Shown piece by piece: positions 2-58,064 of a DNA stretch of 64,000 nt (positions are counted from its first letter, which is position 1; every line of letters begins with the position of its first letter). A program made the position numbers and the translations under genes. This DNA comes from Andalucia godoyi And28 (taxonomy: Eukaryota; Protista; Jakobida): NCBI GenBank assembly GCA_009859145.1, contig VRVR01000018.1:303923-367922 (forward strand), in the 5' to 3' direction. The notes under the pieces are model-generated. The model saw nothing but the letters and a program-made list of their open reading frames with translations, ran no database searches and was not told where the DNA came from.

Positions 2-3000
2 CGAAGTCAGTTTTTTAGACCCTTGTTACCAACCGACGGATTCGCGCTGCCAGACACGTATGTGTTTGTCGTTGTGGACGTTTCGCAATCCGGTGCTTAT
101 GTATGGGTAGACGGCAATCTTGAAATTTTTGTGCGCTTTCCTTCCAACGCTACCAGTTTGAGACTTCCCACTGGTCCCCAGACGGTTCATTTTGGACGAC
201 GGTGTCCCACAGGCGGATACTGCCCCCTTCAAGCGATCGACCATATCGCGGTATTCAGCAGGAGTCTGGGACCCGAGACGGTGGCGAAGTCATTAACGTC
301 GGACCCGCGGACCAACGCCCGTGTGAACACTTCTCTTATTGCGTTGTACTCGTTTGACGGGACAAATCTGGCGCAGAGTATGGTTCCCTCGAACGGATTG
401 TCGTTTGTCAGCTCTTCGTTGTCGAGCAAGCCATCTTACGCCAAAGTAGAAGGCATCCACTTTGCAGAGTGCCCATCACAGTCTGTGAACTGCTCCACGT
501 TTGGAGGTCACGCGTTCTTTCGAAATGACGTTGTTCTGAATCAGTGGAATGCACGACTGTCGGATTCCATGACAACTGATTTCAGAATCGTCGATCGTCT
601 CTCGTCGTGCGAACAGCTGCGAGCAATGGGATATAATCGCGATGTCGAGACTGTTCTGTACTCCAAAGGGTTAAATGCTGTTGTCGTTCACTGCAAGTAC
701 ATGTCCGGCACGACGCCGTCTGCATTCCTGAGGTTGGTCACTCCCGCGACAATGAACTTTACCGGTGGAAAGAAAATTTGGGAGAAATTGCCAATATCCA
801 TGAGTTCTAACAAAATATGTGCTTCTTGCATGGATTTTGTGACGTTTGATCCTCCCAATTCCTTTTTTAAAGGTGATTTCGGAAACTTTTCAGGCGAAGC
901 AGTTGCCACACAGAACATTCATTTTGAAGCGGATTTCATTAGCAGCCCTTTTGGGTTCGGGCAGCGATATGTCCGCCTGTTCAATGTCGGTGCTTTCAAC
1001 CAAGACTTCACGAACGGCAATCGCACGATGTCCATAACTGCATCGAATGGCGAAGGGGCGTATATACCGGGGTGCTTCGAGTACGGGGGGTTTTGCATCA
1101 CTCTCGACGCTGCTTCGAGTTCTCCAAACGTTTCTTTTCCCTGGAAACTCGTAACATTTGTTCTTCCGCCGAGCACTTCTTCTGATGGCTCTTCATTGGC
1201 GTACCCGTCGCAAAGTCTCACCGTGCAACTCGGCGGCAGGCGACCAACCGGTTCGCAGTCCTGGTACTTTTCGTTCCAGTTTCAACTGAAAACAGCACGC
1301 GCGTTTACGAATCAGCTTGCTGACAATGATGGGGATAATCCCGCAAACTGGGATGGAAGCGTTTTACCGGGCGCACAAGACACAGTGTTTGTCGGCGCTG
1401 GCACGTTGATTCGGTTTCGAACCGCGCAGCTGAGTGTGCTGAAGTTTGTCTTGTCCGGTGGCACTGTGGTTGGTCCGGGTGCGAACAACGACTCATACTA
1501 CATTCAAGCGCAGGGCGGAAGCCTGTCTACAGGGACGCTTCAGGATATACGCATCATCTTTTTGCTGCCGACAGGGACTCCAAAGTCAAATGGAGTAGAC
1601 ATGTCGCCCAAAAGTGGACCAACACTAACCCTCAACAATTCCACCCTGGAATTTGTCAACACATCCTTCTCTTTTATGACGAGGATGAATGCTTTCAACT
1701 CCCGTTTTGTTTCCAACAGTCAGTTCGAGTTTTGGCACCTTCTGTCGCCATTTGGAAATCTCTCGGATTTCACCTTGCAGATCAAATCTGGAGGAACCGG
1801 GCTGATTCGAAGCTCTGCAACCGTTGCACCGCTATCCCTGATTATCGAACCTGGAGCGATGGCTGTTGTGCCGTTTTTTAACCAGTTCACTGACGTACTG
1901 GGTTCTCAAAAGAACTTTATTGATAACAAGGGCGTGCTCATGTTCGGATACGATGCAAAGGCTGTGCAGGATGTGTACCTCACGGATGCCGATGATGGTG
2001 GTAATTTGAATGGCGCTATTTTCAAATTGTTCCGCCCTCTGAGTGAAAATGTGCGCTCTCGTATCAACTGTCCTGCTGCCAGTCCAGCGGCTTTGGTGCT
2101 CCCATCTCGTGGCATGGACGTGATGCTGACGACAAATCCCCTTCCTGTCAATCTACCGAATTCCTACATTATTGTCAATGTTTCGTTTGGTGATGGCTCA
2201 TCATACGACTGCATCCTGACAAACAGCTCGAGTACTGGTACGATTTCAATCTCAGGAGGTGTGCTTTACTCGGGTATCGGTATTTTGGATGTTGTATTTA
2301 CTCAATTGTATTCCGGGCCGCTTAGTAGCTTATCTCCATTGGGCGCGGTTCTCAACGTTTCCGTTCCACAAATTCTGCGATCTTGTGCGACGCTGATCCG
2401 CGTTACGGTGAATTCTCCGAATGCAGCCATCGCTGTTCGTAGCATTTTGATATGGTCACCGCAGAGTGTGGTGGACGTCTCCCGCTCGTCATTGCTATCG
2501 ATCGAAGCGATGAGTCTTTGCAGGAAGTCACTGCCAATTCGGTTTTCCAACGACGGTGGAATGGTGAGGAGTTCCGGTTTTGGAAGCTTGATGTTTTCTG
2601 GGGATTGGTCCCGCGGTGGTGAGAATACATTGAAAGGACAGTTTTTCTTTTCAAATGAATCCGCAGTCGTGTTTGACATCAATCGTGCTCCGGCGGTTAC
2701 CAATACGGCGACGTATTTTCTGCCATCCTCTTCCGCACTCTCGGTTTCTCTGCTGATTGTGAACCCACGTGCTCGACTTATCGTCGACGGGAGCTTGATT
2801 GCTCGGGATGCGCTGATAGCAGGACAGCTGCTGTTCACAGCCGACTGCCTTGCGAATAATCGGTCCGCGATTCCATCAATCAGCATCGCCAACATATCCG
2901 GGGTACTTGTGGGCGTTGCGCAGCAAATGTTCCGCTTCGACGGTGGCTCTTCTGCTGCATTCTCTGCGGTTAATTCTTCGAACGGATCTCCGATTTCTGG

Positions 3001-6000
3001 CGCTCTTACTGTGTCCAGCGCTGTGCAGGACGAGTGGAATCGATGGATTGAATTGACAGATGCAGATCCAACGTCGGAACTGTTTCTTCGGTTCGATCCG
3101 TCTGTCCGATCTCTGTGCAGTAATTCGTTTTCCTGCGTCCTGTCACTGGATCGGCGAGTCAAAAGGGGAGATGTCGCTGTTCCATTGAACCGGGAAATCA
3201 CGGGAGACTATTTCTTGGGTGCTCCGACATATGCCAAATCTTGGATTCTCGACCCTGCCGGTATTAGAAACTTCTCCGTTCTTCCGGATATTTGGATGGC
3301 CGAAATCGTAAGTTTTCATGCTGCGCCAGTACCTTTCAGGAACACCATCGTTTACGGACCTGACGCCGGTGATGTCGAGCAACTGAATCATGTGAGCGAT
3401 TTGTTCACCCGTGCGGAGTTCTATGCAGACGGTGGTCTTGTACAGGAAACAGTCGCCTTCGACAACGTGATTGCTGTCGGCTCGTTAATGCAGGTTGAGG
3501 ATTGCTGGATTTCCAGATTCCATCCACTCGGAGCAACCGTCAAATTCCGAGTCACGTCGAAATCCTCCACGATGAGTCTGCCTGCAAACATGACTGTCAC
3601 GATGTCACAGTTGAGCGCTCCGACCGCCAATGCGATGCTATTCAACCCTTCAACCTCCTTTTTGTCCATTCTGGACTCGCAGTTCAATTACGGATTCGAC
3701 ATCTCGTTTCTGATGTCTGTCGATGAGTATGCATTGTCCGTTAAGCCGTTCTCACCTTCCCCAGCGATTTCCGTGTGTCCCGGTGTTATCAAAGTTGGAC
3801 GGCAGTCGCTGACAGTGCTCCCCTCATTGTTGGATGCTTCTTCGTTACGGAGGATTTCTTTGCGCATCCAGGGGTTCAAGTCGTCGGATGTGAATGCGCT
3901 GCCGTCTGGACTGGCGTGCGTGTTTAATGCGCTTCAGCAGCAAAATTCTTCCGCAGTTTGGGACAGTAGTTTGGGTGTTGTCAATTGTTCCGTCCCCGTT
4001 TCTGTTGCCGCCGGCAGTGTGAATGTGATTTTGCAGAATGGGACTATTGAATTGGGTTCTGGAAATTTCAGTATCTCCAATGTCGCGACGTTTTCTGCTG
4101 CATCCGTGGACGTGAATGCGACCTTTATTCGGATTTCCTTCTCTTCTCCCACCAATATGCCTTCCTCTCCTGATTGTTCACTCCTTTTGCTCCTGGCATC
4201 TCGCCTGACTTTGGGTGAAAGGACTGGCTTGCAGTGCTCATGGCAGGATGCGTCGAACTTGGTGATTCAGCTTGGGCAGCTGGTTGTGTGGAACAAAGAT
4301 GATCCGTTTTTCAATATTTCGATAGTCCCCGGGTCCATTCGAGATGGCACCGATGTGACAGCAGCGGCGCAGATTCCAACTTTGATTCGGCTTCCGTTCT
4401 CTCCTCCGTTGCCGATGTTCCAAATCTCTCCCAGTCAAGCCGTTGTGAACATTTGTGACGCCTTTTCCCTCTCTGCAGTACTGGTTTCCGGAGGTTTGAA
4501 CCGGGCGGTGAGCAGCACTTGGAGGTTGTTGTCCACGTCCATGACTGGATTCAACCAGTCTTTGCCGTATCCCGTGTCCAGCAGTTTGGAAGTGTCACTG
4601 GGTGACCCCTTTCGACTTCCAGGATCTTTCGTATTTGAATTCACGGGAGTGAACGCGTTTGGATATCAGTTCCGCGCAACGGTGAATGTGACGAGACGTT
4701 CCAACGAAATAACGAGTGCCAGCATAGTGGGTCCGAGTCCTGCAACAGTTCGCATTTCGCAAGCTTTGACTTTGAATTCTCTTGTTGCGTCCGCCTCCTG
4801 TCTTTCTTCGCTGGGCTTCTCAGTAGACTATGAATGGAACATCTCGGGATCGACGTTGTCTGCTGTTGCAATCGGAAAGGCTGCATCTGCAAAGGGGCTG
4901 TCGTCGATCGTGTTCCCTGGGTTTGCGTTCGTTTCGGGGAACAATTACAGTGTTTCACTGCGAGTGAAGACTGTTCCGTTCCTGTCGTCCGCATTGCTTG
5001 CCGAGTTCCAATTCTCTGCATTTGCGCTGCCATTGTCTGCGGTTGTGGACCAAGGCTCCTTTGTGGAGCAAGGAGTGGCCAGCCCACTGCGACTTTCGAG
5101 TCTGGGTTCTGTTGATCCGGACAACGAGCCTGGAATCACTCCCACCTTCTTGTGGTCTTGCCTGCGGTTTGCGAACTCCACTGCAGCGAAACTCAGAGAC
5201 GAATCCCAAGGAGCTGTCTGCTCAGAGATCTCTTCCGTTGCCAAGACTGCTTCCGTTTTAGACATCCCAGCCAAAGTTCTCCAGGTCTCCTTTTCGTATG
5301 TATTTGCGATAACGTACTCGAAGGGCTCGCGCTCTTCGACGTCCTCGATTGTCGTGTTTACAAAGTCCGGAAATCCGCCGCTTGTGCGCATTTCCCAGCC
5401 GGTGACGAAGGTGTCTGCAGCCGAAAAGGTTGTGGTGACCGCGGAGGTCTCGTCTCCTGATCCACGTCCTCAAATTCAGTGGCAGTTTGTTTCGGGATCA
5501 CCGTCGTTTGATCTAACCAACAGTTCGCTAATTCTTTCGTCTGACAAGTCCGCCAACCTTGTGATCGCCCCCGGAATTCTTGTTTCTGGCCAAACTTATT
5601 CGTTTGAAGTTGTCGTCACAGATCAATGGGGTGCGAACTCGTCCGCATTCCGGAATGTCATCGTCAACACTCCACCAGCAGGTGGGTCTTGCTCCGTTAT
5701 TCCCGACTCCGGGTTCGAACTGGAAACGGAATTTACGCTGTCATGCTCCGGTTGGTCGGATGAAGATGCTCCAATCCAGTATGATGTTTATCTGGTGAAC
5801 AGGGTTGATCTTTCTGTCGTTGCGCTTCCTCTCACTGTCGAGGACCCGAACCGTGTGATACTGCTTCCGAACCAACTCATCTATAATACTCCAAAGATGA
5901 TTTTGCCTCCGTCAAAAAGCTCCACAGGAAATATGACGTTGCTGTTCAACATCAGAGATTCATTCCGATCGTCTGTTTTGGTATCTGCGAACGTCAAGGT

Positions 6001-8980
6001 CGTGCGCAAAGTGTTTGCAACCGAAGGTGCTCGAATCTCGTTCGTCAACAATGTCGTGAACACGGAACTAAAGGAAAAGCTGCAGTCTAACGACACAACA
6101 GCCATCTTGCAATTGACAACTTCTATTGCGCAGTCGCTGACTTCGAACAGTTCTGCAGCCTCGGCAGCCTCTAGCCTTATTTCGCAGTCGTCTTCTTCGC
6201 AAGACTCTTCCAAGTGCCCAGCCTCGTGCTACAACGGTGTCTGTGTTACGCAGAACAACGTCGCGTTTTGCAGATGCAATGCAGGCTGGGGTGGCCCTGT
6301 GTGCAATCTCAACCGAACGGAAATTGACGACCGAGCCCGTGTCAACGCCCAGCTCTTGCAGGGCCTTCTGCAGGTGAGTGCGTCGCCGTCGTCGACCATG
6401 GATGTAACGGAATCAAAGCAGCTTTTGCGCTCCACGATGGACGCTGTTGTAACGATCACTGAGAATCCTCTGATGATTGATGATTCGGGAGCTGCAAAAA
6501 TGGAGTCTGTTATCTCCAATGTCGTTCTTGCAGCGCAGAATACGGGGGCGGACAGTCAGTTGTTCGAGCGCATGAATTCCGCATTGTCGCAATACGTGCT
6601 CATGGTTGGATTGGGCGAGAGCTTGCAGCAGCGTCAATCGTTCTCAGAGCAAGGCAGAAATCGATCCGCGACGGCAGACAGGAAGAATGCGCAAACCGTC
6701 AATGACCTGATGCGTCAAATGGGTCAGTCAATTGCGGTGTCGTTGTCTGCTGGAGAGCGCGCCGTGGAAACATCGACCTCCGTGTTCGTCAATCGCATCC
6801 AGAAGAAGGACGCGAGTCAGCTTGGCGGTAGTCGGATCGAAGCAGGTGGTTCCCTACTTGTTGCGGATCCTTCTTCCAACGTCACGTCAGCAATGTTTGA
6901 TCTTCCTGCTTCATTTTCTCCTTGCCAGAACTCGAACGAATCATCGAACCACGTCACAAATTGGAATCGCAACCCGTATTCGTTTGCAATGGGGGCGAAC
7001 GACACGACCGCATCTACATTGGTGACCTTTAGATTTACGGACTCGAATGGGACGGAATGCTCGGTTGCCAACTTGCAGGTGCCCATCGTTTTCTATATTC
7101 CTTTGAGCGCAAATGCGTCCTCTGCGATGAACACCAGTGTGATTCCTTCTTGTTCTTTTTTCGACGATGCAGCGCAAAATTACTCAACCAAAGGTGTGCA
7201 AAGCAAGGTTCTTCGGAATTCCCGCGGTCACGCGTACGCTGTTCAGTGCAACACGACCCACTTGACCTCCTTTGTAACATTTGAAGCTGCGGCGTCTTCG
7301 GTGCCTGACGTTGCGCTCGTCGATGTGACGAGTACGAATGCGTACAATGCAGATTTGTTGACATCCGACATTTTCTATGTCGTCTTGGCGATATTGCTCA
7401 TCGGATGGAGTCTGATGATCCTTGGTTATATCAAGGATCGTCGTGCACAGCTTGATTTTCTGTCTGCAGCGGTAATCACCGTGTTGCCTAGCTCCGCTTC
7501 GGCTTCCGTGGACATGCAAAATCCTTGTTCTGCACAGCCGGATTGCGAGCAGCCGGCAGATGCACATCAGATCTTGGTGGGTGCAAAGTATGTCGCAAAG
7601 GATTCTGAATCGCAGCCGGTTTCGAGTGGAGGAGATGTTTCAAAGCCGATGGCAGAGGCGCAGGCAGACAAGGCCAATGGCCTTCCAAAGGACGAAGAAA
7701 GTGGAATTGCTCCTGCGGAAGGCGTTGTCTTCCCCGTCGGTATCTATGCATCGACAAACGCGGGAGATGTTGCCGCCTACCGTGTTGAGGGCGACGAAGA
7801 AATTGTGACCCTCAAACAAGAAGACCGTTGGGTTCAGTTCCGTCGTCGCTTGCCTCCAAAGATGAAGCACGAGCATTTGGTGCTGTCAATGTTCTTCCGC
7901 GATCCTCATGAACTTGTGACTCGTCCTCAACGGGTGATGCTTCTCATGTGCCTGATTTTCCTTGCTATGGCGATCAATGCGTTCTTTAGCCCAAGCAAGG
8001 ATGCGTCATTCGGTGCAAAGTTTGCAGTGAGCGTGCTGAGTTCATGGATGGCCGAGCCATTGGTTGTCATGATGTCGCTGTTGTTTGCTCGCATTGCCGC
8101 GGATAAGGAAAGGAATCGCCGCCGAAAGGAAAAGGTCCTGAGAGGAGAAACGACGTCGAACGCCGCGGCATTGGCGGTAGCTGCGCCTCCTGGTCTTCCT
8201 GTCCTTCAGCCGCTCACCGATACTTCGTCGCCGTCCTCCGCGTCCACGCAGCCCCAGGTTTCTGCATTTCCGACGGCGGATAACGCCGCATCCGCCCCGT
8301 TGTTTTCTCCGCGTTCTCGCGCAGCTGTGGACAATGCTGGCACGGCCCCAGAGGACCAGCAATTCGACTCGGTGATTACTCTGGATTCTGGATTCCGCTC
8401 GAGGAGGTACAATAAGCAGATGAAGAAGCTGCGCGATGGCAGACCTGTGTACGGTCCACCATCGATTGCGAACATTTTGATCATTATGTTTACCATGATT
8501 TTGTTTACCTTGTTGATCGTGTTCTGGCTTCTGCAGGCTGGAGCGGAGCCGTTTGAAATTGGCATTTGGGTGGGAGCGATGGCGCTTCTTACCATATTCT
8601 TTTTGTATGCGCAGGTTTGGAGGCGTCGACCGCGTTTAGATGAAGAAGGTGTGCGAGCGATGGCGCAAAAGCGACGTGATGACCATGATAAGGCGTTTGC
8701 GGATGACGGTGCCCAGTTTTTGTTCCCAGCGTGGTGTGTTGTGCTTGTGTACATTCTGGCGGCATTGATTCAAGCATTTGCAGTTCACGTCATCTTCATT
8801 TACGCATTGATGTTTGACGCCGACAGTCGCCACTTCTGGTACATTGATTGTGCGTTGTCTTTCTGTCAGGACATGCTTATCGTCGAACCGCTTGTGATCA
8901 TCGGTGAGGCGCTTCATGAGACATTCTTGGACACTGTCGCAGGAGAATTCGTGGACATGATCATGTCTGTCATTTGCTAA
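2..8980 (+). CDS. Polycystin-1-like giant membrane protein (LamG/ConA-like, fibrinogen-like motif, beta-helix-like region, REJ, EGF, GAIN/GPS, multi-TM); 5' end lies upstream of the window
   Basis: Frame is open from base 2, so the ORF-track TTG at 23 is not the true start. LamG-like motif (VWVDG...IDHIAVFSRSL...LYSFDG). REJ-like repeats (SVDPD...FLWSC; VNTPPAGGSCSVIPDSGFELETEFTLSCSGWSDED). EGF (CPASCYNGVC...CRCNAGWGGPVC). GPS CSFFD...CNTTHLTSF at ~7151-7273. PKD1-type membrane motifs HLVLSMFF...TRPQRV and W...SFCQDMLIVEP. Confidence 0.85.
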   Translation, partial: RSQFFRPLLPTDGFALPDTYVFVVVDVSQSGAYVWVDGNLEIFVRFPSNATSLRLPTGPQTVHFGRRCPTGGYCPLQAIDHIAVFSRSLGPETVAKSLTSDPRTNARVNTSLIALYSFDGTNLAQSMVPSNGLSFVSSSLSSKPSYAKVEGIHFAECPSQSVNCSTFGGHAFFRNDVVLNQWNARLSDSMTTDFRIVDRLSSCEQLRAMGYNRDVETVLYSKGLNAVVVHCKYMSGTTPSAFLRLVTPATMNFTGGKKIWEKLPISMSSNKICASCMDFVTFDPPNSFFKGDFGNFSGEAVATQNIHFEADFISSPFGFGQRYVRLFNVGAFNQDFTNGNRTMSITASNGEGAYIPGCFEYGGFCITLDAASSSPNVSFPWKLVTFVLPPSTSSDGSSLAYPSQSLTVQLGGRRPTGSQSWYFSFQFQLKTARAFTNQLADNDGDNPANWDGSVLPGAQDTVFVGAGTLIRFRTAQLSVLKFVLSGGTVVGPGANNDSYYIQAQGGSLSTGTLQDIRIIFLLPTGTPKSNGVDMSPKSGPTLTLNNSTLEFVNTSFSFMTRMNAFNSRFVSNSQFEFWHLLSPFGNLSDFTLQIKSGGTGLIRSSATVAPLSLIIEPGAMAVVPFFNQFTDVLGSQKNFIDNKGVLMFGYDAKAVQDVYLTDADDGGNLNGAIFKLFRPLSENVRSRINCPAASPAALVLPSRGMDVMLTTNPLPVNLPNSYIIVNVSFGDGSSYDCILTNSSSTGTISISGGVLYSGIGILDVVFTQLYSGPLSSLSPLGAVLNVSVPQILRSCATLIRVTVNSPNAAIAVRSILIWSPQSVVDVSRSSLLSIEAMSLCRKSLPIRFSNDGGMVRSSGFGSLMFSGDWSRGGENTLKGQFFFSNESAVVFDINRAPAVTNTATYFLPSSSALSVSLLIVNPRARLIVDGSLIARDALIAGQLLFTADCLANNRSAIPSISIANISGVLVGVAQQMFRFDGGSSAAFSAVNSSNGSPISGALTVSSAVQDEWNRWIELTDADPTSELFLRFDPSVRSLCSNSFSCVLSLDRRVKRGDVAVPLNREITGDYFLGAPTYAKSWILDPAGIRNFSVLPDIWMAEIVSFHAAPVPFRNTIVYGPDAGDVEQLNHVSDLFTRAEFYADGGLVQETVAFDNVIAVGSLMQVEDCWISRFHPLGATVKFRVTSKSSTMSLPANMTVTMSQLSAPTANAMLFNPSTSFLSILDSQFNYGFDISFLMSVDEYALSVKPFSPSPAISVCPGVIKVGRQSLTVLPSLLDASSLRRISLRIQGFKSSDVNALPSGLACVFNALQQQNSSAVWDSSLGVVNCSVPVSVAAGSVNVILQNGTIELGSGNFSISNVATFSAASVDVNATFIRISFSSPTNMPSSPDCSLLLLLASRLTLGERTGLQCSWQDASNLVIQLGQLVVWNKDDPFFNISIVPGSIRDGTDVTAAAQIPTLIRLPFSPPLPMFQISPSQAVVNICDAFSLSAVLVSGGLNRAVSSTWRLLSTSMTGFNQSLPYPVSSSLEVSLGDPFRLPGSFVFEFTGVNAFGYQFRATVNVTRRSNEITSASIVGPSPATVRISQALTLNSLVASASCLSSLGFSVDYEWNISGSTLSAVAIGKAASAKGLSSIVFPGFAFVSGNNYSVSLRVKTVPFLSSALLAEFQFSAFALPLSAVVDQGSFVEQGVASPLRLSSLGSVDPDNEPGITPTFLWSCLRFANSTAAKLRDESQGAVCSEISSVAKTASVLDIPAKVLQVSFSYVFAITYSKGSRSSTSSIVVFTKSGNPPLVRISQPVTKVSAAEKVVVTAEVSSPDPRPQIQWQFVSGSPSFDLTNSSLILSSDKSANLVIAPGILVSGQTYSFEVVVTDQWGANSSAFRNVIVNTPPAGGSCSVIPDSGFELETEFTLSCSGWSDEDAPIQYDVYLVNRVDLSVVALPLTVEDPNRVILLPNQLIYNTPKMILPPSKSSTGNMTLLFNIRDSFRSSVLVSANVKVVRKVFATEGARISFVNNVVNTELKEKLQSNDTTAILQLTTSIAQSLTSNSSAASAASSLISQSSSSQDSSKCPASCYNGVCVTQNNVAFCRCNAGWGGPVCNLNRTEIDDRARVNAQLLQGLLQVSASPSSTMDVTESKQLLRSTMDAVVTITENPLMIDDSGAAKMESVISNVVLAAQNTGADSQLFERMNSALSQYVLMVGLGESLQQRQSFSEQGRNRSATADRKNAQTVNDLMRQMGQSIAVSLSAGERAVETSTSVFVNRIQKKDASQLGGSRIEAGGSLLVADPSSNVTSAMFDLPASFSPCQNSNESSNHVTNWNRNPYSFAMGANDTTASTLVTFRFTDSNGTECSVANLQVPIVFYIPLSANASSAMNTSVIPSCSFFDDAAQNYSTKGVQSKVLRNSRGHAYAVQCNTTHLTSFVTFEAAASSVPDVALVDVTSTNAYNADLLTSDIFYVVLAILLIGWSLMILGYIKDRRAQLDFLSAAVITVLPSSASASVDMQNPCSAQPDCEQPADAHQILVGAKYVAKDSESQPVSSGGDVSKPMAEAQADKANGLPKDEESGIAPAEGVVFPVGIYASTNAGDVAAYRVEGDEEIVTLKQEDRWVQFRRRLPPKMKHEHLVLSMFFRDPHELVTRPQRVMLLMCLIFLAMAINAFFSPSKDASFGAKFAVSVLSSWMAEPLVVMMSLLFARIAADKERNRRRKEKVLRGETTSNAAALAVAAPPGLPVLQPLTDTSSPSSASTQPQVSAFPTADNAASAPLFSPRSRAAVDNAGTAPEDQQFDSVITLDSGFRSRRYNKQMKKLRDGRPVYGPPSIANILIIMFTMILFTLLIVFWLLQAGAEPFEIGIWVGAMALLTIFFLYAQVWRRRPRLDEEGVRAMAQKRRDDHDKAFADDGAQFLFPAWCVVLVYILAALIQAFAVHVIFIYALMFDADSRHFWYIDCALSFCQDMLIVEPLVIIGEALHETFLDTVAGEFVDMIMSVIC

Positions 8981-20397: not shown

Positions 20398-20435
<38 letters not shown>
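20398..20435. repeat. (GT)19 microsatellite in the RAD6 5' leader region
   Basis: Direct reading of the sequence. Confidence 0.95.
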
Positions 20436-20440
<5 letters not shown>

Positions 20441-20959
20441 TCCTCGGTCTGTTTGTTCTCTTTCTTTTTTTCCTGAACACCTCTCGTCACTTTGTGATGC
20501 GCGAACAGTCTCTGCGAAATTTCCCAAAAAAAAGCCGGGGGGAAGAAGAGATAAAAAAGACAAAGAGAAGACAAAGAGAAGAGAAAATAGAAGAAGAAAA
20601 TGAGAAAAAAGAAGAGAAGGGGAAAAAAAAAGGCGGGCACGCAAAACCAGTCCCATCATCCTCTTCAGCCCCGGTGTCACACTTGAGGCGTCTTCCACAA
20701 AGTCCGAAACTCTGCGATTCTCGTTTTGAATGACGTCAGTCAACGTGAGTCTGCGTGGCCGTGGGGAGGTTACGACAGCTTTAATTCGGTCGCTATTCGA
20801 TTCAGCCGCCGGGCATCACAGGCATCATTGCTCCGACTTTGGAGGTTTTAAAGAAAGAGCATTCAACACTATTCAGCGGTCCATTGGTATTTCGAAAGCA
20901 AGCATCCGGACAGAAGAATATTATAATAATAATATATTTTTGAAAAACAAAAGGAGCGG

Positions 20960-23900
20960 ATGACTGGCAGACGGACCCGAGTCCTTCTGGAAATCTTGAC
21001 GGTGGCTTTGCTGGTTCCACTCCTGGTTGCTGCAGATCCTACAGTTGATTTTGTAAGCTGTTCCAGCAGTGCAACTGTGCAGGACACGTCGATGTGCTCC
21101 ACGGACGGGTCTTCGTCCATGTACATATTTGGATCGAACTTTGGCAATGATTCGACGGTTGTGGAGATTACAGTGGACGGGACAGTTTTGGTCGACCCTG
21201 ACATTGCATCGGTTTCAGACACTCTGCTGGAAATACAGCTTCCTGCAGGCCCCACTAATGCAGCGCCAACTGTGGAAGTCAGCGTGGGAGGAGTGCTAAG
21301 CACAGCGGTATCCTTTACGTATGCAGTTCCGGTAATATCTTCAGCTGTGTGTTCTTCTGGAGGATCGACTTGTCCTACGTCAGAGTCTGGGCTGACGATT
21401 CACGGTGTGAATTTTGGAAATACTGCGTCTGGGTCTTTGATTGTGCTCTCATCTGCATCAGGAACAATATCGGCAGTTTCTTGTCAGACGGATTCGCACA
21501 CGCTAATCACATGCGGGGCGTTTGAGGGTGCCGGGACGGCCGTGGCGGTGAGCCTTACAAGGGCAGTCGATTCTGCCCAGGCGACGAAGAATGCAGCGTT
21601 TTCGTTTAAACTACCAGTTGTTAGTTCTTACTCCTGCGATCCAAAGTGCAGTACAGACGGCTCTGCCGCGATAACAATCTCCGGATCCGACTTTTCGCAG
21701 ACTCTCGACAATGTCGACTACGTGAAGGTGTCCGGGGTGGATTGCAAGACCTCTGGGATCACGGCAGTCTCGGGGCACAATCGACTGGTATGCCAGCTGC
21801 CAGCCGGACCTGGGGCGGTGAACGACATTGTCGTCAGAATTGGGGGCCAGACATCTGCTTCTGTTGACTTTACATACGCTGCAGTGCAGATTTCAGATGC
21901 ATTCTGCACTGCGGTTGGAGGTCGCTGTCATACATCCGGCGACACCCTCACGATCCGCGGAAGCGATTTAGGAAAAGGGACACCCGCTGGAACAATTACT
22001 CTTCCTGGAGCGCTTGTTGGAGGACACCCGACCGCCTGCACCGTCACCGACTCGACTCACACGGAAATCCACTGCTCGGGGTTTGTCGGTGCAGGATCAG
22101 GCGTCGACGTCTCGATCACAAGGTCCTACGAAGACGACAGTGCAGCGACCAGTGCATCAAAGCTTGCAGCGTTTTCTTTCTTCTCGCCCGTTCTGCTCTC
22201 GTACGAATGCAAAACGGCTGGCGGATCGTCGACGGATCCCACGGCGGCCAATCCGCACTGCACCACTGATGGAGCAGCCACGATCACTCTGAAAGGAACA
22301 GATTTTGGCCCGGCAGTCGCAAACTTGGAGCACGTCTTCATTGACGGCGAGGAGTGCTTGGGCCTGACAGCAAACGGCTTGCCGACGGTTTCTGCTGGAC
22401 ATGATAAGATTGTGTGCAACCTGCCTGCGGGGACAGCAGCCTCTGCACCGCAGCTGATTGACGTTCAGATTGGCGGTCAGGCACTGGGCTCATCCGTTGT
22501 CTTTTCATATTCTGCCCCTACAATAACAGCAGCCACGTGCGGCGCAGGTGCTGGCCTGTGCGACACTTCTGGAGACACGATCACCATCTTGGGCACCAAT
22601 TTTGGAAGGCGAGCGCCTCGCATTACTCTTTCTGACACATCCAGTGGAAACAACTATGTTCAACTGGATCCCAGTTTTCCAGGCACGGCGGCGATATCTT
22701 CCAGTGCCCATGACTGCCACGTAGATGGTACACACACGCAGATAACGTGCAAAAACTTCAAAGGTGCCGGAGCTTCCGTGACCGTAGTGCTGAATCGGGC
22801 TGATGGGACAACTGCCTCCGGAACGATGGGATTCCGAGCGCCTGCCATTTCCTCCTATTCCTGCTCGACGGATCCCACCAAGATGGGAGACAACAACTGC
22901 GGAACGGATGGCACGGCTACCGTGACGCTGGTCGGTACTGGATTCCCGCACACTGTTCAAAATCTGGATGAAGTCACATTCGGAAATGTCGGAACGCAGC
23001 ACAGCTGTCGCTCAACGGCAGTGATCCTGTCAGACACCAGTCTGGAGTGCGTTCTTCCGGAGGGACCCGAGATCGGACCCAATACAGCATCCGTGGAAGT
23101 TGGATTGCAGACCACTGCTTCCCCCGCACCCTTTTCGTATGCGAGGCCCTCTATCTCCGCTGCGAACTGCAATGGCGGCGTCTGCAAGACCGTGTCGGAC
23201 ACCATCACGCTGACTGGCAGAAACTTCGGCAAACATATCCCAGCTACCGGGAGTGGTGCAAGCATTCAGTTGTCTTCCGGCACCTACGCATTTATCGATC
23301 CATCATCATGCCAGAGCACTGCTCTCGGAAAGCACTTCGGCCTCACATGCTCCGGGTTTGAAGGAGCCGGAGTGGACATCAATGTGCTGTTGTCCCGAGC
23401 TGACGCAGCTTCCGTTCAGCGAAACAGATCCTTTTCATTCATTCCTCCAGTGGTTACCGCTTACTGGTGCTCCACCGGCTCGAACGGACCTGTTATCTTA
23501 CAGGGCTCTGGTGCAATCACCGATCCGCAGCGATTTTCGTTCTGTAGAACCGACGGGACTGCAGTCATCACGTTCTACGGTCAAAACTTTGGATTCCACG
23601 CGGGGCATGTCGACACGATTTCCGTCGGAGGGCAGAGCTGCTCGGGGTCTGTGTCTCGGGTTGTGGACGCAGCCGACCCCGAGTACACCCACAAACATGT
23701 GACGTGCACACTGCCGGAGCAAGCAGTGTCTCAGGGCACTGCAACGCTGAACCAGGATCTCGTGATGACAGTTGGGAGCCAGCTGACCACACTTGCAGGC
23801 GCATTCCAGTACAGACCTCCCACAATTCTCGGGACGTTTTGCGGGGGGTCTTCAGCATTCGGCCACTTTGCCGCGAATGCGTATGATTTGACAGTTGCAC

Positions 23901-25792
23901 CGGGCCAGCGATGCAGGACGATTTCAGATACGCTGACGATCATCGGGGACGATTTCGGACCGTCCAATGCGACTGTATGGCTCTCTCGATCTGGCATTAT
24001 TTATTCGCTGGGGACAAGCAATCTTTCTTGTTCACATGATGCGCATACTTCTACCACGCGCCATCAGATTATGTACTGCACATCATTATGGGGCGTTGGC
24101 ATCAATGTGGACGTCTCCCTGCGCCGTGCCGATACGAAATCATTCAGCTTTCCGAGCGGCTTTTCTTTTGCAGCACCAGTGATACAGTCCTACAACTGTT
24201 CGTCGAGTGGTGTTTCCGGCTCCTTGTCTTCGTGCGACACGCACAACTCTACGATCACTGTGCTCGGCGCAAATTTGCCAGTCGTGATGTCGGATCTTCA
24301 GTCGCTTTCGTTCGGCGGGCTCCGATGCGATAGCCAGCAAGGAAGCATTCCCAACTGGGCATTCATGGACGGAAACCATAATATGAATCAGTCTGCGCGG
24401 ATAATCGCGTCGCATTCTGCAGTCACATGCCGATTGCCCATACAGTCCGGGACCAAGAACATCGAGATTACGGTTGCCGATCAGTCGTCTGCACCGTTTT
24501 CGTTCCAGTACTCGCCTCCCCAAGTTTTCAACTACTCTTGTTCGTATTCGGACGGCTGGGACGAGGGCAGCTGGAAAAAAGGGATCTGCGGGACCCACGA
24601 CACGGTGGTCACATTAAGGGGAGTCAATTTTGGCAGAGGAGACGAGACCCTTGATATCACCATCGGCGGGCTAGTGTGCGCTCTGCATGGAACTCGGCAC
24701 GTCGTTCCGCTGGATTATCCCACGGAGCACTTTATTTCGTATTGTCGGGCCCCCGAGCAGACGGGAGCAAATCTGACCATTTTAGTGGCCGCGAGTGGTC
24801 AAACTGGCCCTCCCTTGAACGCATTTACCTATTCACAGCCCGTTCTTCGAGCAGTAAGTTGTTCTGGGAGACCGGAGGCGGGTCTCGCGTCGTGGTGCGG
24901 GTCGGAGGGCACTACTTTAACGGTCCTCGGAGATCACTTCGGGAACGATCCACAGCTGCTGACCATGAACATTTCCAACAAGATTGGCAGTGCCACGGCC
25001 ACGAACTTTTCCGACTGCATTGTTGGGCAATCCGACTGCGGTCCCTACGTTTGTACGTCCCTCCAGCTGGAACGATACCAGCCCTCTCGATCCCCTTATT
25101 CTGCTCTGGGACATTTCGCATTCTCGTGCATCATCGATCATGGCTATGGAGCCAACATGGAAGCCGCAGTGACTCTTCGTGGTCAGACGGTCGTCCTCCC
25201 GTTCCGGTTTGATCAAGAGCCGTACACGACCAACGCTCGGAAAAGCAACGAGGAGGACTTTCTGTTCGTTGACACTCTCGACGGGGGCGATATCGTGGCG
25301 TCGGCCGTCGACATGACGCGGGCCTTGTTGTTTGCAGGCTACAGTCGATCGTCGACCATTCACACCTTTGAGCCGAGTGTTCCGTACACAGCAGCGACCT
25401 TGGAAGCTGCAAAGGACATTGTTGGGTTCCAGATCAACGCGTCGATCGCTCTGTTTCATACTCTGAACAGCCAGAACCCGGCGTTGCCAGTGGACTTGTG
25501 TTTCCTGCAGATCACTGACCGCTCTTCGTGGCCGTCCTCGCGGGAGCTGAACTACCAAACTCTTCTCTATGCAGCCTCTTTGCTGTCCTCCCACTCCACG
25601 GACACGTATCCTCGATGCACCACCGTTGGGCTGCTCATGGACTGGGAAGTTTGGAAGTCTGCATTTGGCGATCCGCGCCACGACGAAATGTACAACGGAA
25701 CCTTTGCTCTCCGTCAGCATCCGGTTTTTGTGCTGTCTCAAGACGAAATACTGCGGAAAGAAGAGCATTTTCCTTTTGAGCTTCTTGATTGA
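20960..25792 (+). CDS. Secreted protein with ~13 Cys-containing IPT/TIG domains and a C-terminal degenerate GH25 lysozyme-like domain (1610 aa)
   Basis: Signal peptide (VLLEILTVALLVPLLVAA). Repeated P-x-I-x-S...C..TxG..ITIxGxNFG...C.LP.G...V.V.G...FxY units. C-terminal LCFLQITDRSSWPSS...N...VGLLMDWEVWKSAFG. No TM or clear GPI signal. Confidence 0.85.
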   Translation: MTGRRTRVLLEILTVALLVPLLVAADPTVDFVSCSSSATVQDTSMCSTDGSSSMYIFGSNFGNDSTVVEITVDGTVLVDPDIASVSDTLLEIQLPAGPTNAAPTVEVSVGGVLSTAVSFTYAVPVISSAVCSSGGSTCPTSESGLTIHGVNFGNTASGSLIVLSSASGTISAVSCQTDSHTLITCGAFEGAGTAVAVSLTRAVDSAQATKNAAFSFKLPVVSSYSCDPKCSTDGSAAITISGSDFSQTLDNVDYVKVSGVDCKTSGITAVSGHNRLVCQLPAGPGAVNDIVVRIGGQTSASVDFTYAAVQISDAFCTAVGGRCHTSGDTLTIRGSDLGKGTPAGTITLPGALVGGHPTACTVTDSTHTEIHCSGFVGAGSGVDVSITRSYEDDSAATSASKLAAFSFFSPVLLSYECKTAGGSSTDPTAANPHCTTDGAATITLKGTDFGPAVANLEHVFIDGEECLGLTANGLPTVSAGHDKIVCNLPAGTAASAPQLIDVQIGGQALGSSVVFSYSAPTITAATCGAGAGLCDTSGDTITILGTNFGRRAPRITLSDTSSGNNYVQLDPSFPGTAAISSSAHDCHVDGTHTQITCKNFKGAGASVTVVLNRADGTTASGTMGFRAPAISSYSCSTDPTKMGDNNCGTDGTATVTLVGTGFPHTVQNLDEVTFGNVGTQHSCRSTAVILSDTSLECVLPEGPEIGPNTASVEVGLQTTASPAPFSYARPSISAANCNGGVCKTVSDTITLTGRNFGKHIPATGSGASIQLSSGTYAFIDPSSCQSTALGKHFGLTCSGFEGAGVDINVLLSRADAASVQRNRSFSFIPPVVTAYWCSTGSNGPVILQGSGAITDPQRFSFCRTDGTAVITFYGQNFGFHAGHVDTISVGGQSCSGSVSRVVDAADPEYTHKHVTCTLPEQAVSQGTATLNQDLVMTVGSQLTTLAGAFQYRPPTILGTFCGGSSAFGHFAANAYDLTVAPGQRCRTISDTLTIIGDDFGPSNATVWLSRSGIIYSLGTSNLSCSHDAHTSTTRHQIMYCTSLWGVGINVDVSLRRADTKSFSFPSGFSFAAPVIQSYNCSSSGVSGSLSSCDTHNSTITVLGANLPVVMSDLQSLSFGGLRCDSQQGSIPNWAFMDGNHNMNQSARIIASHSAVTCRLPIQSGTKNIEITVADQSSAPFSFQYSPPQVFNYSCSYSDGWDEGSWKKGICGTHDTVVTLRGVNFGRGDETLDITIGGLVCALHGTRHVVPLDYPTEHFISYCRAPEQTGANLTILVAASGQTGPPLNAFTYSQPVLRAVSCSGRPEAGLASWCGSEGTTLTVLGDHFGNDPQLLTMNISNKIGSATATNFSDCIVGQSDCGPYVCTSLQLERYQPSRSPYSALGHFAFSCIIDHGYGANMEAAVTLRGQTVVLPFRFDQEPYTTNARKSNEEDFLFVDTLDGGDIVASAVDMTRALLFAGYSRSSTIHTFEPSVPYTAATLEAAKDIVGFQINASIALFHTLNSQNPALPVDLCFLQITDRSSWPSSRELNYQTLLYAASLLSSHSTDTYPRCTTVGLLMDWEVWKSAFGDPRHDEMYNGTFALRQHPVFVLSQDEILRKEEHFPFELLD

Positions 25793-26183
25793 CACACGCA
25801 CACACACCCCCACTCTCTCATACCACTAGTATTACTTTTTTTTCTCCCTTCTCTCTTTTGCCATTATCACGCAATTGAAAGCGGTATCTCTCCCTTCACG
25901 CTTGGTCCGCTGTGTCTGCTGTGTCCACTGTCCGTCGTCCATTGTCCAAACTCCAAGAATTCCGTCTGCTTCTTTGGCTGTCGTAATTCTGAGCTGGGAA
26001 AACCCGAATCGATTGTTCGAGTTTTTTTGTGTTTTGAACTTCAAAAGCTGCTTTGACCAAGTCGAGAAAAGCAATCGAGCCTTCTTTTCTTTTTCCAGTT
26101 GTTTTTCTGCTCGTTGTTTTTTTATATCCTTTCTTTCGTTATTAGAACTTTTTATCAAACAAAAAGTGAGGAATAGGAAGAAA

Positions 26184-27398
26184 ATGTTTGCAAAGTTGGG
26201 AAAGCTCGTTGATAAGGCGTCGGAAGCAGTAAACGAAAAAAAGAATGAGGTTTTGCACAAGGTGAATGCGAAGCGTGACTTTTCTTCGACTCGTGATTTG
26301 CAAACGGAGGTGCAAGAGCTGCGTTCCAATACGCTGAAGTATCACGAGCAGACGCGGGATGCTGTGAGTGCAATTATTGGGTTTGCGATTGTGAACCATG
26401 GGCTTTCTTCGGCCATCCATGCGCAGATTACGAGTCCGTTGCAGTCGTCAATGAGTGCGTTGCAGCCGATCCTTGACCAGCTGTCGCAAGCAGCGTTTGT
26501 TCTGGATGGGTACATCCAGGAGGAAGGTGCAGCGCGGAAAGCAGCACCGAACCAAGGTAAGCCGCTGCAGCCAGTGGAGAATGGTCCCGAAGAAGACATG
26601 CAGTTCACTGCGACGCGGCTCGCGATTCGCCATGCAAAGCTGCGAGATTTCACGACGAAGTTCCTTGCTGCATTGGACTCGTTGCACACGCTGCTGTTCA
26701 ATGCAATGGATGCAACGTACAAGGCTGCAGACGCAGCGCTTCCAAAGACATGCCCGAGGCAAACGGTTCCTTGGGAGCAGTTGTGGGATGAGTTCCGCCC
26801 GGCAACCGGGGCCTCTGCATCGAAGCCCCCTGGCAATGTGGCTGCTTCGGACCCGTCTGTGAACTCGGGGAAGCCAACGCCTGCGGACGAGCTTGCCGCG
26901 TTTGTGAGGCCGACGGACGGCGATGTGCGTGCAAAGTACGCGAAGCAGTGGGATTTGCTGGTTGCCGGGGTCATTGAGACCGCCCGTGAGCAGCAGCAAC
27001 GGACCGACAAGCTTGTCGGACGCGTGAAGAAGGTGCTCGAGTATGCGTCGGTGTGGGTCCAGTCGGATATGTCTGGGCTTCCTGCGATCGAAAAGACAAC
27101 AAAGTTCTTTGGAATCTACGCCACGCAGTTTGACACGAAACATCTTCCCGAGTTCCATGCAAACTATGAAAACTTTGTGAAGAAACTCGAGGGCCACAGT
27201 GCGTATGTGCCGACCCCGAACATCACTCCGCCAACCACCGAGGCGCATCTCGAGATCCCCAGACGCAGAACAGGAGATGTTCGAGAGGCGATTCTGGCTG
27301 CGTTTTCTGCATTGGCAACCTTTTATGGGCGCTCCGTCTCGGAAGTCAAGATGTTTGGACCTGCTCTTCTCAACGCCATTGGAGAACCTGGGCGCTAA
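26184..27398 (+). CDS. Uncharacterised alpha-helical / coiled-coil protein (404 aa), possibly BAR-like
   Basis: Long ORF with coding-like composition between AT-rich flanks. Starts MFAKLGKLVDKASEAVNEKK. Amphipathic helices throughout; family not recognised. Confidence 0.7.
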   Translation: MFAKLGKLVDKASEAVNEKKNEVLHKVNAKRDFSSTRDLQTEVQELRSNTLKYHEQTRDAVSAIIGFAIVNHGLSSAIHAQITSPLQSSMSALQPILDQLSQAAFVLDGYIQEEGAARKAAPNQGKPLQPVENGPEEDMQFTATRLAIRHAKLRDFTTKFLAALDSLHTLLFNAMDATYKAADAALPKTCPRQTVPWEQLWDEFRPATGASASKPPGNVAASDPSVNSGKPTPADELAAFVRPTDGDVRAKYAKQWDLLVAGVIETAREQQQRTDKLVGRVKKVLEYASVWVQSDMSGLPAIEKTTKFFGIYATQFDTKHLPEFHANYENFVKKLEGHSAYVPTPNITPPTTEAHLEIPRRRTGDVREAILAAFSALATFYGRSVSEVKMFGPALLNAIGEPGR

Positions 27399-52413: not shown

Positions 52414-55400
52414 CTACAACAAACCGAAGCAGACGATAGAAAACTCCACGTTGACACTGGACCAATCATACCATCCGTAGCTGGAATGCAGCATTCCGGC
52501 ATACATCTCTGTTGCAGTCTGGACTCGGACATTGATCGACAATCCTGCAGCATAGAATCCCGCCAAGCTGCAGACACAGCTGGGCACTTTCGAGTATGGA
52601 GCACCGAAATTGAATTGCAGCTGATACGACGACTGACCAGCAAAGACAAAATTGTATACAGAATACGTCACGAGAGAACCACCATTCCATCGGCCGCGAA
52701 ACACGGAGCTTCGGAAGAAGGACGACGCTTGGGAACCGTCTCCAAGGGAGGGAACAATCGAGAGCGGATACAGGTTTTGAAAGTACAGTGAGCCTTGAGC
52801 AAACATGTCTCCTTCAAAGCGGGAACTGCCTGCGACGTGCAACGAAGCTGTTGGACTTTGTGTGTTGATTCCAATTCTTACATCGGAAGTCACGCCCAGA
52901 ATCGTCAACGCAGACGCAAACTGGAGACTGCCGATCTTGCTTCCAATGGCGAACCGGACACCATTCGGTCCGTTGTACTGCTGCATCCGCAAATACGAAG
53001 AGTCTACCAGTACGCGCGACACAGATCCTCCATCGACGTACACGAGCCCGCGATCTTCGACGGTCGAGTCCTGCATTACATTTGCAGCCCCATTGACATG
53101 AAACTGCGCAGACGGTAAAGATGAATATGGAAATCCGATACCCACAACAGAAGATGGATACAGGAGGAATACGGATGTATACATTTGGAGAATCTTCGAG
53201 ATCTGGAGCCGCAGAAAGCTATCCGTAGAGGATATGAGAAACGAAGCGCCGTTGGAAGCATGAGAAAAGAACTGATTTGCAATGGCCGCATCATGAACAA
53301 CCACGGTCTGATCAGAAATGAGCATTCCTTGAACGGTTCCCTTGCCATTGATCTCCAAATTGAAATTTGGAAACAGAGTCCCGATGCCTACCAGTCCTGA
53401 TGATCCCAAAAAGAAATCAGGACGGGATGCTCCGAATGTATTCGCAGTGAATACTGTGTTCCGCGATTGCTGCTCGAACACAAAGGAGTCATATTGGGCA
53501 CCAGATCCAGCAATGTACGACACTGAAGTTCGCAGCAGTCTATACTCTTGTCCACTCGATGGTAGGAACAGCAGACAGGTTGGATCAGACGCAGTTATCT
53601 TGGAAAAGTACACTCCATTATCCACATCCACATCCGCAAAAATCTTCATGGCCCCAAAAACATCAAGTTGAGCGGTAGGAGGCGCTCCGGATCCCTTGAC
53701 GGCGACATATCCGCTGGGATACACAGAGAGTACTTCTGTACCTCCCGAGAAAAAGGAGATACACCCTGATGTACCAGTGTTTGTATTTCGTTTCTCGAAG
53801 AAGACGTCTCCGGAAGTGGATTGCGTGTGAATGATCCGAAATCCGGTTTCGGACGGAAAGGCATCCAATAGTACTCGTCCGTTAGTGGAATTTTGGAAAC
53901 TGACCGCTCCAAACAACGAAACCTCGGGCTGAAAGCTGGAGATACCGTGAAACGCAATCGGAGCTGACATCGATGTCTGGGTCAGGGGACCAGAAACGGA
54001 GACAGATCCTTGCGATGAGAGCAGCAAACTCGGAATTGAAGCAGGGTCGGAAGACACGAAGGCATGCCCACCGTTCAACATGTGATTGTCGAACAGTATA
54101 TTTCTGGCGGAATCTGTCGACACCGCAAGACTGAAAGATCTCGTGGAAATCAGTGGTCCACCACAGAGACTACATGCAGCAGCGGATCTTACGTCCACAG
54201 TCGATTTTGCATAGAATACGGACTCCGAGCCCCTGACTTGCAGCGATCCAGCAACTGCGAAGTCATGCACTGTCCACGAGGATGGCGCCGCCGTATTGCC
54301 AATAAAAACGGACCCGTTGGCTGCCGACATTCGTAAAGTGTTTCCATACAGCAAGGAAGTGCCATCCACATTGATCTTGGCATTGTTGAGGAACACGGCT
54401 GATGCAATAGTCAATTTCCGCGAAGCAGTCAACGAAGTTCCGCCAAACGAAACTTCTCCTTCTTCGGATATAGTCATGGGAGCCGAGTAGAAAGCGCGAG
54501 GAGAAGAGCAAAAGGACCATAGGCTTGAAACATTGAGGCAATCGGAGCTGAACACAATGGACGATATGTTCAACCGAATGGTTGTCGAGGACAGCTGAAC
54601 ATCGTTGGAGTTCAGCGTCACGAAATGAGATGAAGACATTGAAACAGACAGCTGTCCGTGTACGGTGGAGATGCCACGTATGTCTACGCGAAACTCCGCA
54701 GTTAAACTCCCCCCTGTGAGATTCACGGAGCCGCTAACGACATTCGGAGCACTATTGCTGAACGACCCGGATGAGTTTAGTGAATGCATTGTGATGCCCC
54801 GTAAGACGTCTGCCGAGCCGTACAAAAACGAATTATTCAGCAGCGTCACGCTTCCCGAAGAAGACAGTGACGCATTTCCGAATACGGAACCATGAATAAA
54901 TGCATTCGGAGCAACGGCAATTCTGCTTTTCGTCTGCAGATCTCCCGCTACGATCCCACGCTCTTCGGCCAAAAGATTCGTTTTTAACATCACGGAAACG
55001 GTGGCCAAAGACGAAGTGGACAAATCGCCAGGAGAGAGTACACGAGATTGCACGGATGTGAGATTTCCCGCAGCAAGGACTGTACCAACACTAACACTGC
55101 TGTGCAAACTTGAGAGAGAAGACACGAATAAGGAGCCAACATGAGCTCTGTTAGCGTACTCGACGGATCTGGATATATTAAGAAATGGAGACAACAGCTG
55201 GTTCGTCCAGCTGCTGCAGTTCATCGAGGATGTGCAAATTGCCACGGGACCATCAGCGATGTTGAAAGAATCCAAGAAAGAAACGACAGAAGCAGCGATG
55301 TTACCTTGCTGAGCAAAAAGCTCGTCAGCCATTACATCGCCGTGAACGGACAGCAATGTTCCCACAGACACCATCGCATGGGAAACAAGCACTTGAGACC

Positions 55401-57765: not shown

Positions 57766-58064
57766 CAGAGAACGCAAACACACACACACACACACACCAA
57801 GAAATGCGGTTCCTGGTTGGAATGACTTGTAACAGACCACCAGACCAATAGAAGGGGATTATGATTCCTGCCGATGCAAACCTATTTTTTTGATGATCGC
57901 AACACGAAAACGCTTTCTTCTAAAACGGCGTGATGTTGTCGAAACTCGAAAAGCAGCAGGGTGACAAAACGCTGGGATATGTTGCTTGCACCAACCTATC
58001 CTTCGCAATCAACGAGCACCGACTTTGTTTGCGTGCATTGTTCTGGGGCACAAACTTGTCCGTT

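Follow-up and report, generated by a model that had tools for sequence, protein, structure and literature searches.

What kind of domain stands at the end of the long series of extracellular repeats encoded by a single-exon gene of Andalucia godoyi And28, and can it still act as an enzyme? The gene occupies positions 20960 to 25792 (+ strand) of a 64,000-nucleotide stretch of contig VRVR01000018.1 (hereafter the window, all positions being counted from its first letter), and its open reading frame (ORF) runs uninterrupted from ATG to TGA, encoding 1610 amino acids plus stop; no alternative frame or downstream exon that would extend it was found in the window. The first-pass annotation, made from the sequence alone, had described the product as a secreted rod of TIG domains tipped with an inactive lysozyme-like domain of glycoside hydrolase family 25 (GH25), and this overall architecture is supported here by a family profile and by the residue register that the profile yields. 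The explanation that we favor, and hold to be moderately probable, is that of a secreted TIG stalk with a GH25-derived, catalytically dead C-terminal domain, which would serve as a non-enzymatic module for binding or attachment.

The product is of a predicted secreted type, with a signal-peptide-like N-terminus and no membrane anchor. At its N-terminus, MTGRRTR precedes an 18-residue hydrophobic run, and residues 5-24 form the sole hydrophobic segment of the protein (Kyte-Doolittle mean >1.6); the hydropathy scan detected neither a transmembrane helix nor a hydrophobic tail at the C-terminus, which is hydrophilic. The call was made by hydropathy and inspection, and the N-terminus of the homologue P0002 (see below) is a clear signal peptide too. 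When the whole protein was compared with Pfam, nothing besides the IPT/TIG family PF01833 was matched (E = 2.7e-47; 159 bits, with a gathering cut-off of 20.9), in 8 stretches. Its 54 cysteines occur in sets of four, and this periodicity, combined with self-alignment, resolves 13 units where Pfam alone resolves 8, in line with the approximately 13 TIG domains first proposed. The proposal that the first ten of these alternate between two types, A and B, as a result of duplication of a two-domain cassette, was likewise confirmed: the odd units (U1-U9) are mutually 26-48% identical and the even units (U2-U10) 32-42%, as against 17-35% across types; mean identity over U1-U10 is 35.8% within and 24.2% across types (relabelling permutation, p = 0.008); and the best matches of each of these units are of its own type. 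Both of the motif sets quoted for the two types are visible in the unit alignment (C.TDG ... C.LP.G and C.TS.D-T ... C..F.GAG). The alternation does not extend to units U11-U13, which are either A-like or idiosyncratic, U13 being atypical in having six cysteines and an insertion. In comparison with the PDB, a profile of the TIG units matched the MET IPT domain (E = 3e-7), plexin-A1 IPT domains and an entry named 'TLP-IPT' (E = 1.2e-8).

The age of this arrangement can be gauged from two observations taken together: (i) inside the TIG gene there is no repeat at the DNA level except one 20-nucleotide match, and (ii) the units of the window protein, of ANDGO_03344 and of the Logan-derived P0002 are orthologous one to one, with 32-54% identity per unit. 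From these it follows that the cassette duplication is ancient and that the order of the array has been fixed. The 20-nucleotide match itself is a direct repeat (21587-21606 and 22160-22179; 85% identity) with a spacing of 573 nucleotides, approximately one A+B cassette, and falls on the AAFSF motif with which units 2 and 4 end.

The TIG array is followed by a domain of mixed alpha/beta structure (Table 1). The first-pass annotation had set apart the last ~180 residues from position 25256; a domain is indeed present there, with its start lying about 20 residues earlier, at roughly 25199-25211. The strings that had been quoted from it as resembling GH25 are all present, namely VDLCFLQIT (residues 1511-1519; nucleotides 25490-25516), SWPSSRELN (1523-1531), VGLLMDWEVWKSAFG (1556-1570) and HPVF (1587-1590). 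A word-index homologue search with a two-sequence alignment of the domain gave no match, and only 3 proteins came back from a full-length homologue search, which TIG-like candidates had flooded. When a two-sequence profile was run exhaustively with HMMER over 1.84 billion cluster representatives, on the other hand, a family of five emerged: the window protein (P0001), P0002 (Logan run SRR15116022), P0004 (ANDGO_03344 of A. godoyi) and the metagenomic fragments P0005/P0007 and P0006. The window domain matches the family profile, which includes the window sequence, at E = 8.8e-94, and matches P0002 pairwise with 31% identity (E = 2e-30). Wherever an N-terminal extension exists (P0001, P0002, P0004, P0006 and the longer P0007), the domain lies C-terminal to TIG or TIG-like sequence; P0005 is a 128-residue fragment, and the N-terminally extended copies make up four of the five family members. 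The nearest named homologue of the window protein, and the family's only named member, is ANDGO_03344, annotated as 'hypothetical protein'; the two can be aligned colinearly over 1613 columns with 41% identity. ANDGO_03344 is the product of an intronless gene, and A. godoyi can be grown in culture. P0002 (L001:379-7191) is 2270 residues long and carries, behind its signal peptide, an EGF-like cysteine-rich module and about 600 residues of extra N-terminal TIG units, which indicates that array length varies at the N-terminal end between lineages. In the literature searched, no paper was found on ANDGO_03344 or on a combination of TIG domains with GH25.

Since the protist and nematode type of GH25 lies outside the phage GH25 profile, sequences specific to this subfamily were sought. 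A nematode-LYS-like sequence (Pfam GH25, E = 3.6e-13), itself suggestively similar to the family, was used as a retrieval probe only, and no conclusion rests on it; the scan of metagenome contigs with this probe gave 15 real loci, and most of the full-length matches resemble short secreted GH25-type proteins. The PF01183 gathering score was passed by five of the seven metagenomic GH25 sequences tested, and the other two, L019 and L023, match these five Pfam-confirmed sequences at E = 1e-48 and 3e-22. Nine real metagenomic protist-type sequences made up the reference alignment, for which in-frame stops in L014 and L015 were replaced by Q. Such stops, one or two at conserved positions of otherwise intact GH25 frames, occur in L014, L015 and L017 and are as would be expected if the source organisms read those codons as an amino acid, as ciliates do, for example. 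In L018 (1501-2091 of JACCDO010392014.1), a 415-residue ORF carries two cysteine-rich repeats upstream of an intact protist-type GH25 domain, and the subfamily thus does occur fused to other extracellular modules.

Compared by hhalign, the five-member family matched the nine protist-type GH25 sequences at 80.3% (E = 1.4e-5; score 42.0) over 179 colinear columns (family 8-242, GH25 10-188), and the family without the window sequence matched them at 86.3% (E = 4.8e-6; score 44.8). Phage GH25 aligned with protist-type GH25, the positive control, reached 98.5% (E = 2e-15; score 100.4). The negative controls were 200 column shuffles of the family (mean score 13.8, maximum 26.8), the reversed family alignment (0.1%; E = 0.48; score 12.9) and seven unrelated window proteins, including a TatD TIM barrel (at most 0.8%; E at least 0.066; scores 10.7-18.9). 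Leaving out any one GH25 sequence except L023 gave 69-86%, and the alignment remained colinear over ~175-180 columns in every leave-one-out subset. The motifs common to the two groups, W.S...N, GI....W.SI.G, PL.Y.xY, SF.DF and F.GW, fall in the same order. Among single family members, P0006 scored 19.5 bits with a hidden Markov model (HMM) of Pfam-confirmed GH25 sequences only and P0004 6.9-8.5 bits with GH25 HMMs, in both cases above all 400 shuffles. On this evidence, which we regard as moderate, it is likely that the C-terminal domain family is remotely homologous to protist-type GH25. The best single GH25 match to the family is L023 (66%; E = 5.5e-5). This sequence (L023:68-604 of contig Ga0006571J49611_1050988) encodes a stand-alone secreted GH25-like protein in which D-x-E itself reads V-I-K (WLVIKD).

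The same alignment places W-I-D-V-E-T of GH25 over F-L-Q-I-T-D of the window protein (residues 1515-1520). The column of the catalytic Asp reads R/R/K/Q/K in the five members and that of the Glu L/S/M/T/V, so that D-x-E has become QIT in the window copy, as the first-pass annotation had read it, and R/K-x-L/S/M/V in the relatives; none of the five members retains the pair. The strand-1 Asp is replaced in four of the five members and kept only in ANDGO_03344, in a low-confidence part of the alignment. With the D-x-E residues replaced, catalysis by the GH25 mechanism is excluded for this domain, to judge by its sequence. Other losses concern conserved aromatic and polar residues of GH25 (Y56, Y127, W152, H155, K177 and Q178), which, from GH25 structures generally, we take to line the substrate groove. 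Of 49 positions that are conserved in at least eight of the nine protist-type GH25 sequences, 17 are retained by a majority of the family and 8 by the window copy; these lie chiefly in the motifs AG, P, W.S...N, G, W, L, Y, F and GW. Another active site could in principle have arisen, making the domain an enzyme that relies, for instance, on the acid of an FEP motif and on the Asp one residue past the former Glu. All five members have E or D before an invariant Pro at a strand end, and four of the five have the second Asp; ANDGO_03344, however, has Asn at that site, most of the aromatic and polar residues that GH25 members have in common have given way to others, and there is no match to any hydrolase family. 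We therefore regard an enzyme of this kind as very improbable.

The window copy of the domain is also shortened. Relative to its four relatives, it lacks ~18 residues after Q1594 (the NGG..TDATF..V block) and ~16 residues after L1598 (the PGP..NYxGW block), with clean anchor matches beside the deletions (PV.., DE(T/I)(I/L) and R...E.FP), and ~25 terminal residues of the relatives are missing past its stop codon. The missing segments are those aligned to the last GH25 strands, that is, the last third of the domain, and the earlier remark that the barrel ends look truncated holds at the C-terminal end. A tblastn comparison of the relatives' tails with the window returned nothing, and thus no hidden exon or frameshift there supplies the missing motifs. 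Modeled by AlphaFold2 (AF2) from the five-sequence alignment, the window domain forms a (beta-alpha)4-beta core with a mean predicted local distance difference test (pLDDT) score of 73.9 and a predicted template-modeling score of 0.75, pLDDT exceeding 80 over most of residues 21-160; the order of its elements, beta-alpha-beta-alpha-beta-alpha-beta-alpha-beta, lines up with the aligned GH25 segments, GH25 itself having a (beta/alpha)5-beta3 barrel. A vWA or Rossmann-like fold, also considered for this domain, was rejected because Foldseek lists TIM barrels rather than vWA and no MIDAS-like motif is present.

A considerable body of results weighs against the reading proposed here, and part of it favors the alternative that the C-terminal domain is an unrelated, lineage-specific alpha/beta domain (TIM-like or a half-barrel) whose likeness to GH25 is due to chance or convergence. 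No standard search finds GH25: Pfam PF01183 matched neither the window domain nor its four relatives, even at E ≤1-10; sequence and profile searches of the PDB with the domain and its relatives gave nothing even at E ≤10, and the same was true of PHROGs with the family; and a phage GH25 profile of nine endolysin catalytic domains, including Cpl-1, reached 0.2% with the family in hhalign (a homologue search seeded with Cpl-1 gave only relatives of at least 80% identity and added no diversity). Foldseek returned no match at E ≤0.001 for either AF2 model in the PDB or for the window model in BFVD. The weak matches (E 0.015-0.2, the best at 0.015-0.04; TMq ≤0.51) are almost all generic TIM barrels, with GH18 chitinases first in the PDB and no GH25 among the top 50 PDB matches; two weak matches in BFVD bear the name 'lysozyme'. 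The second of the AF2 models, that of the full-length ANDGO_03344 domain, is the worse one, its last third having pLDDT <50. The hhalign signal depends strongly on L023 alone, falling to 19.6% (E = 1.2e-3; score 30.1) when this sequence is removed and to 8.8% (E = 3.8e-3; score 26.8) with the five Pfam-confirmed sequences only. The family alignment comprises just five sequences, and the window sequence by itself reaches 0.3% (E = 0.19; score 14.7) with the nine GH25 sequences and 0.8 bits with the GH25 HMM, and cannot be told from shuffles. In addition, 32 of the 49 conserved GH25 positions are lost in the family and 41 in the window copy; with most of these residues replaced, peptidoglycan binding in the canonical groove is no safe assumption, and the case for a predicted peptidoglycan- or glycan-binding function is weakened. 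Finally, no part of the window protein is less conserved than this domain, at 34.7% and 28.4% identity as compared with 32-54% in the TIG units.

These results define what can be said of the window copy: because it is a clear member of the family and is not GH25-like alone, it is tied to GH25 only via its relatives. The GH25 assignment of the first-pass annotation thus stands for the family profile, which is remotely, though significantly, similar to protist-type GH25, and for the proposed register; it does not stand for the window sequence taken alone, in which the likeness is undetectable, or in the standard searches, which are negative. The notion of an unrelated domain has to contend with a score of 42.0 that lies well above both the best shuffle and the unrelated proteins, with colinearity that persists in all of the leave-one-out subsets, with the score of P0006 against Pfam-confirmed GH25 and with common motifs that fall in order, and we consider it unlikely. 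A different objection is that the window domain is a decaying relic, selection acting on the TIG stalk only. It would account for the low conservation, for the retention of only 8 of the 49 conserved positions, and for the two internal deletions and terminal truncation, which remove the family's most conserved motifs; but no interruption of the reading frame occurs anywhere in the domain, the core that remains is modeled by AF2 with good scores, and the family-invariant residues (R, FAGY, P, C...C, W and N) are retained. Judging from the model, the window domain may be either a reduced but folded form or a decaying relic, and we hold selection on the stalk only to be quite unlikely.

If the GH25-derived, catalytically dead domain is accepted, the protein could work in the following manner. 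By analogy with solved IPT arrays, the TIG units would form a stiff, disulfide-stabilized extracellular stalk of roughly 50 nm, the usual length of an IPT domain being ~4 nm, and the domain at one end of it would most likely act as a non-enzymatic module in one of two ways: (i) it may bind a glycan ligand, bacterial wall material being the obvious candidate in a bacterivorous flagellate, or (ii) it may fasten the stalk to the cell's own surface coat. Since the protein is without a membrane anchor, it would be retained on a surface by one of its ends, the pseudo-lysozyme or the N-terminal one, or else be released as a whole. The second option can be extended to a view in which the GH25-derived domain is the base, seated on the cell's own glycocalyx, flagellar surface or matrix, while the N-terminal TIG end, which in P0002 bears the EGF-like module, does the work. 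Non-covalent attachment would indeed be needed if a protein lacking an anchor is to stay on the cell; the N-terminal module and extra TIG units of P0002 suggest that it is the distal end that varies; most conserved GH25 positions, the catalytic ones included, are replaced; and a REJ-domain giant surface protein is encoded nearby, though proximity is no evidence of linkage. Orientation and location are, however, inferred only, and it would be odd for an essential anchor to tolerate the loss of a third of its domain, as the window copy does; we regard this view as rather unlikely.

For the first option, the most far-reaching version would be a role in prey capture or as an opsonin, which is attractive for a bacterivore and would parallel the evolution of peptidoglycan recognition proteins (PGRPs), Gram-negative-binding proteins (GNBPs) and chi-lectins, but which we put forward tentatively and consider rather unlikely. 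In its full form, the scenario has a deep-branching, jakobid-like lineage of bacterivorous flagellates convert a digestive GH25 lysozyme into a head that recognizes bacterial prey without catalysis and is carried on a TIG stalk of ~50 nm, for catching or sorting that prey. This is speculative and unlikely; were it true, it would represent an independent invention of the enzyme-to-receptor route taken by the PGRPs and GNBPs of animals. More generally, a TIG stalk joined to a GH25-derived pseudo-lysozyme is, as predicted here, an unannotated architecture that combines known kinds of module. If the homology holds, it occurs in a lineage important for early eukaryote evolution, adds to the cases in which a hydrolase fold has been put to use for binding, and offers a candidate molecule for the attachment of bacteria by suspension-feeding flagellates or for the building of their surface coat, matters on which, to our knowledge, there are almost no molecular data. 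It also illustrates that annotation by Pfam, PDB and Foldseek misses the C-terminal domain and that subfamily-specific profiles are needed. If the homology fails, what remains is an extracellular TIG protein that is rare, lineage-specific and of no more than modest interest.

Table 1. Coordinates of the features of the TIG gene and its predicted product (positions in the window)
Feature	Position	Strand	Basis
Signal-peptide-like N-terminus (MTGRRTR + VLLEILTVALLVPLLVAA)	20960..21034	+	Hydropathy and inspection
TIG units U1-U10, five A-B cassettes	21038..24175	+	Pfam, unit alignment, permutation
Nucleotide starts of U1-U10	21038, 21329, 21614, 21884, 22187, 22517, 22841, 23147, 23447, 23819	+	
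TIG units U11-U13	24176..25210; starts 24176, 24518, 24839	+	Cysteine pattern, self-alignment
Unit starts U1-U13 (residues)	27, 124, 219, 309, 410, 520, 628, 730, 830, 954, 1073, 1187, 1294		Self-alignment
C-terminal alpha/beta domain, residues 1418-1610 (~190 residues)	25211..25789	+	HMMER family, AF2, hhalign
Q1517-I-T1519, equivalent of GH25 D-x-E	25508..25516	+	hhalign register, column table
Junctions of the two internal deletions	25739..25756	+	Family alignments

The surroundings of the gene are those of a compact eukaryotic genome, mostly intronless and of ~50% G+C, with genes on both strands, in agreement with the compact, intron-poor style reported for the ~20-Mb A. godoyi genome (PMC7050145). 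Other genes in the window encode the REJ-domain giant protein, SBDS, TatD, the PheRS alpha subunit, a Rad6-type E2 enzyme, a cyclic-nucleotide phosphodiesterase, a PH/TPR protein and an LRR protein. The first of these, an ORF of at least 2985 residues at 23-8980 (+) that reaches the window start and carries a REJ domain (PF02010; E = 3e-50), is a predicted polycystin-1/REJ-like giant surface protein and lies 12 kb upstream of the TIG gene. The Rad6-type E2 gene and the TIG gene are divergently oriented, and the intergenic region that separates them contains a (GT)19 microsatellite as well as short tandem repeats rich in purines (20398-20435 and 20542-20632), owing to which the mechanically called ORF of the E2 gene carries a TH-repeat 'extension'. 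Two long ORFs gave no Pfam match at E ≤1e-4: one of 1808 residues at 52414-57840 (-), and one of 507 residues at 25875-27398 (+), immediately downstream of the TIG gene.

Of the known systems, the closest to the C-terminal domain is protist-type GH25 (Entamoeba-type and nematode LYS; PF01183), with which the family shares a colinear profile over nearly the whole domain, a set of motifs, the modeled order of beta and alpha elements and predicted secretion. It differs from protist-type GH25 in failing the Pfam model, in lacking the catalytic Asp and D-x-E together with 32 of the 49 conserved positions, in two insertions (the YPRC loop and the LPGP loop) and, in the window copy, in the absence of the last third. 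The fusion to TIG units sets it apart as well, since eight of the nine GH25 sequences used (short ORFs) appear to be stand-alone secreted proteins of ~200 residues, L018 being the exception. GH25-related scaffolds without the canonical catalytic pair are also represented by L023 and by Rv2525c-like domains (PF08924); L023, unlike the family, is still clearly GH25 (E = 3e-22 with confirmed members) and has no TIG fusion, and no match of the family to PF08924 was obtained in the Pfam searches. The reuse of a dead glycan-hydrolase fold for binding would find its counterparts in the non-catalytic PGRPs, in GNBP/betaGRP (inactive GH16) and in the chi-lectins (inactive GH18). These belong to other folds and lineages, and binding, which is inferred only for the present domain, has been demonstrated for them; we use them as a working analogy and make no claim of homology.

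The stalk, for its part, resembles the IPT domains of MET and the plexins, which likewise form tandem stalks in extracellular proteins and to both of which the TIG profile matches in the PDB. Fibrocystin/PKHD1-type proteins and the Tgr proteins of Dictyostelium are further extracellular IPT/TIG arrays. In contrast to all of these, the window protein lacks a transmembrane segment as well as any sema, PSI, PbH1 or kinase part, and it is distinguished from them by a strict four-cysteine pattern and by an array built from A-B cassettes.

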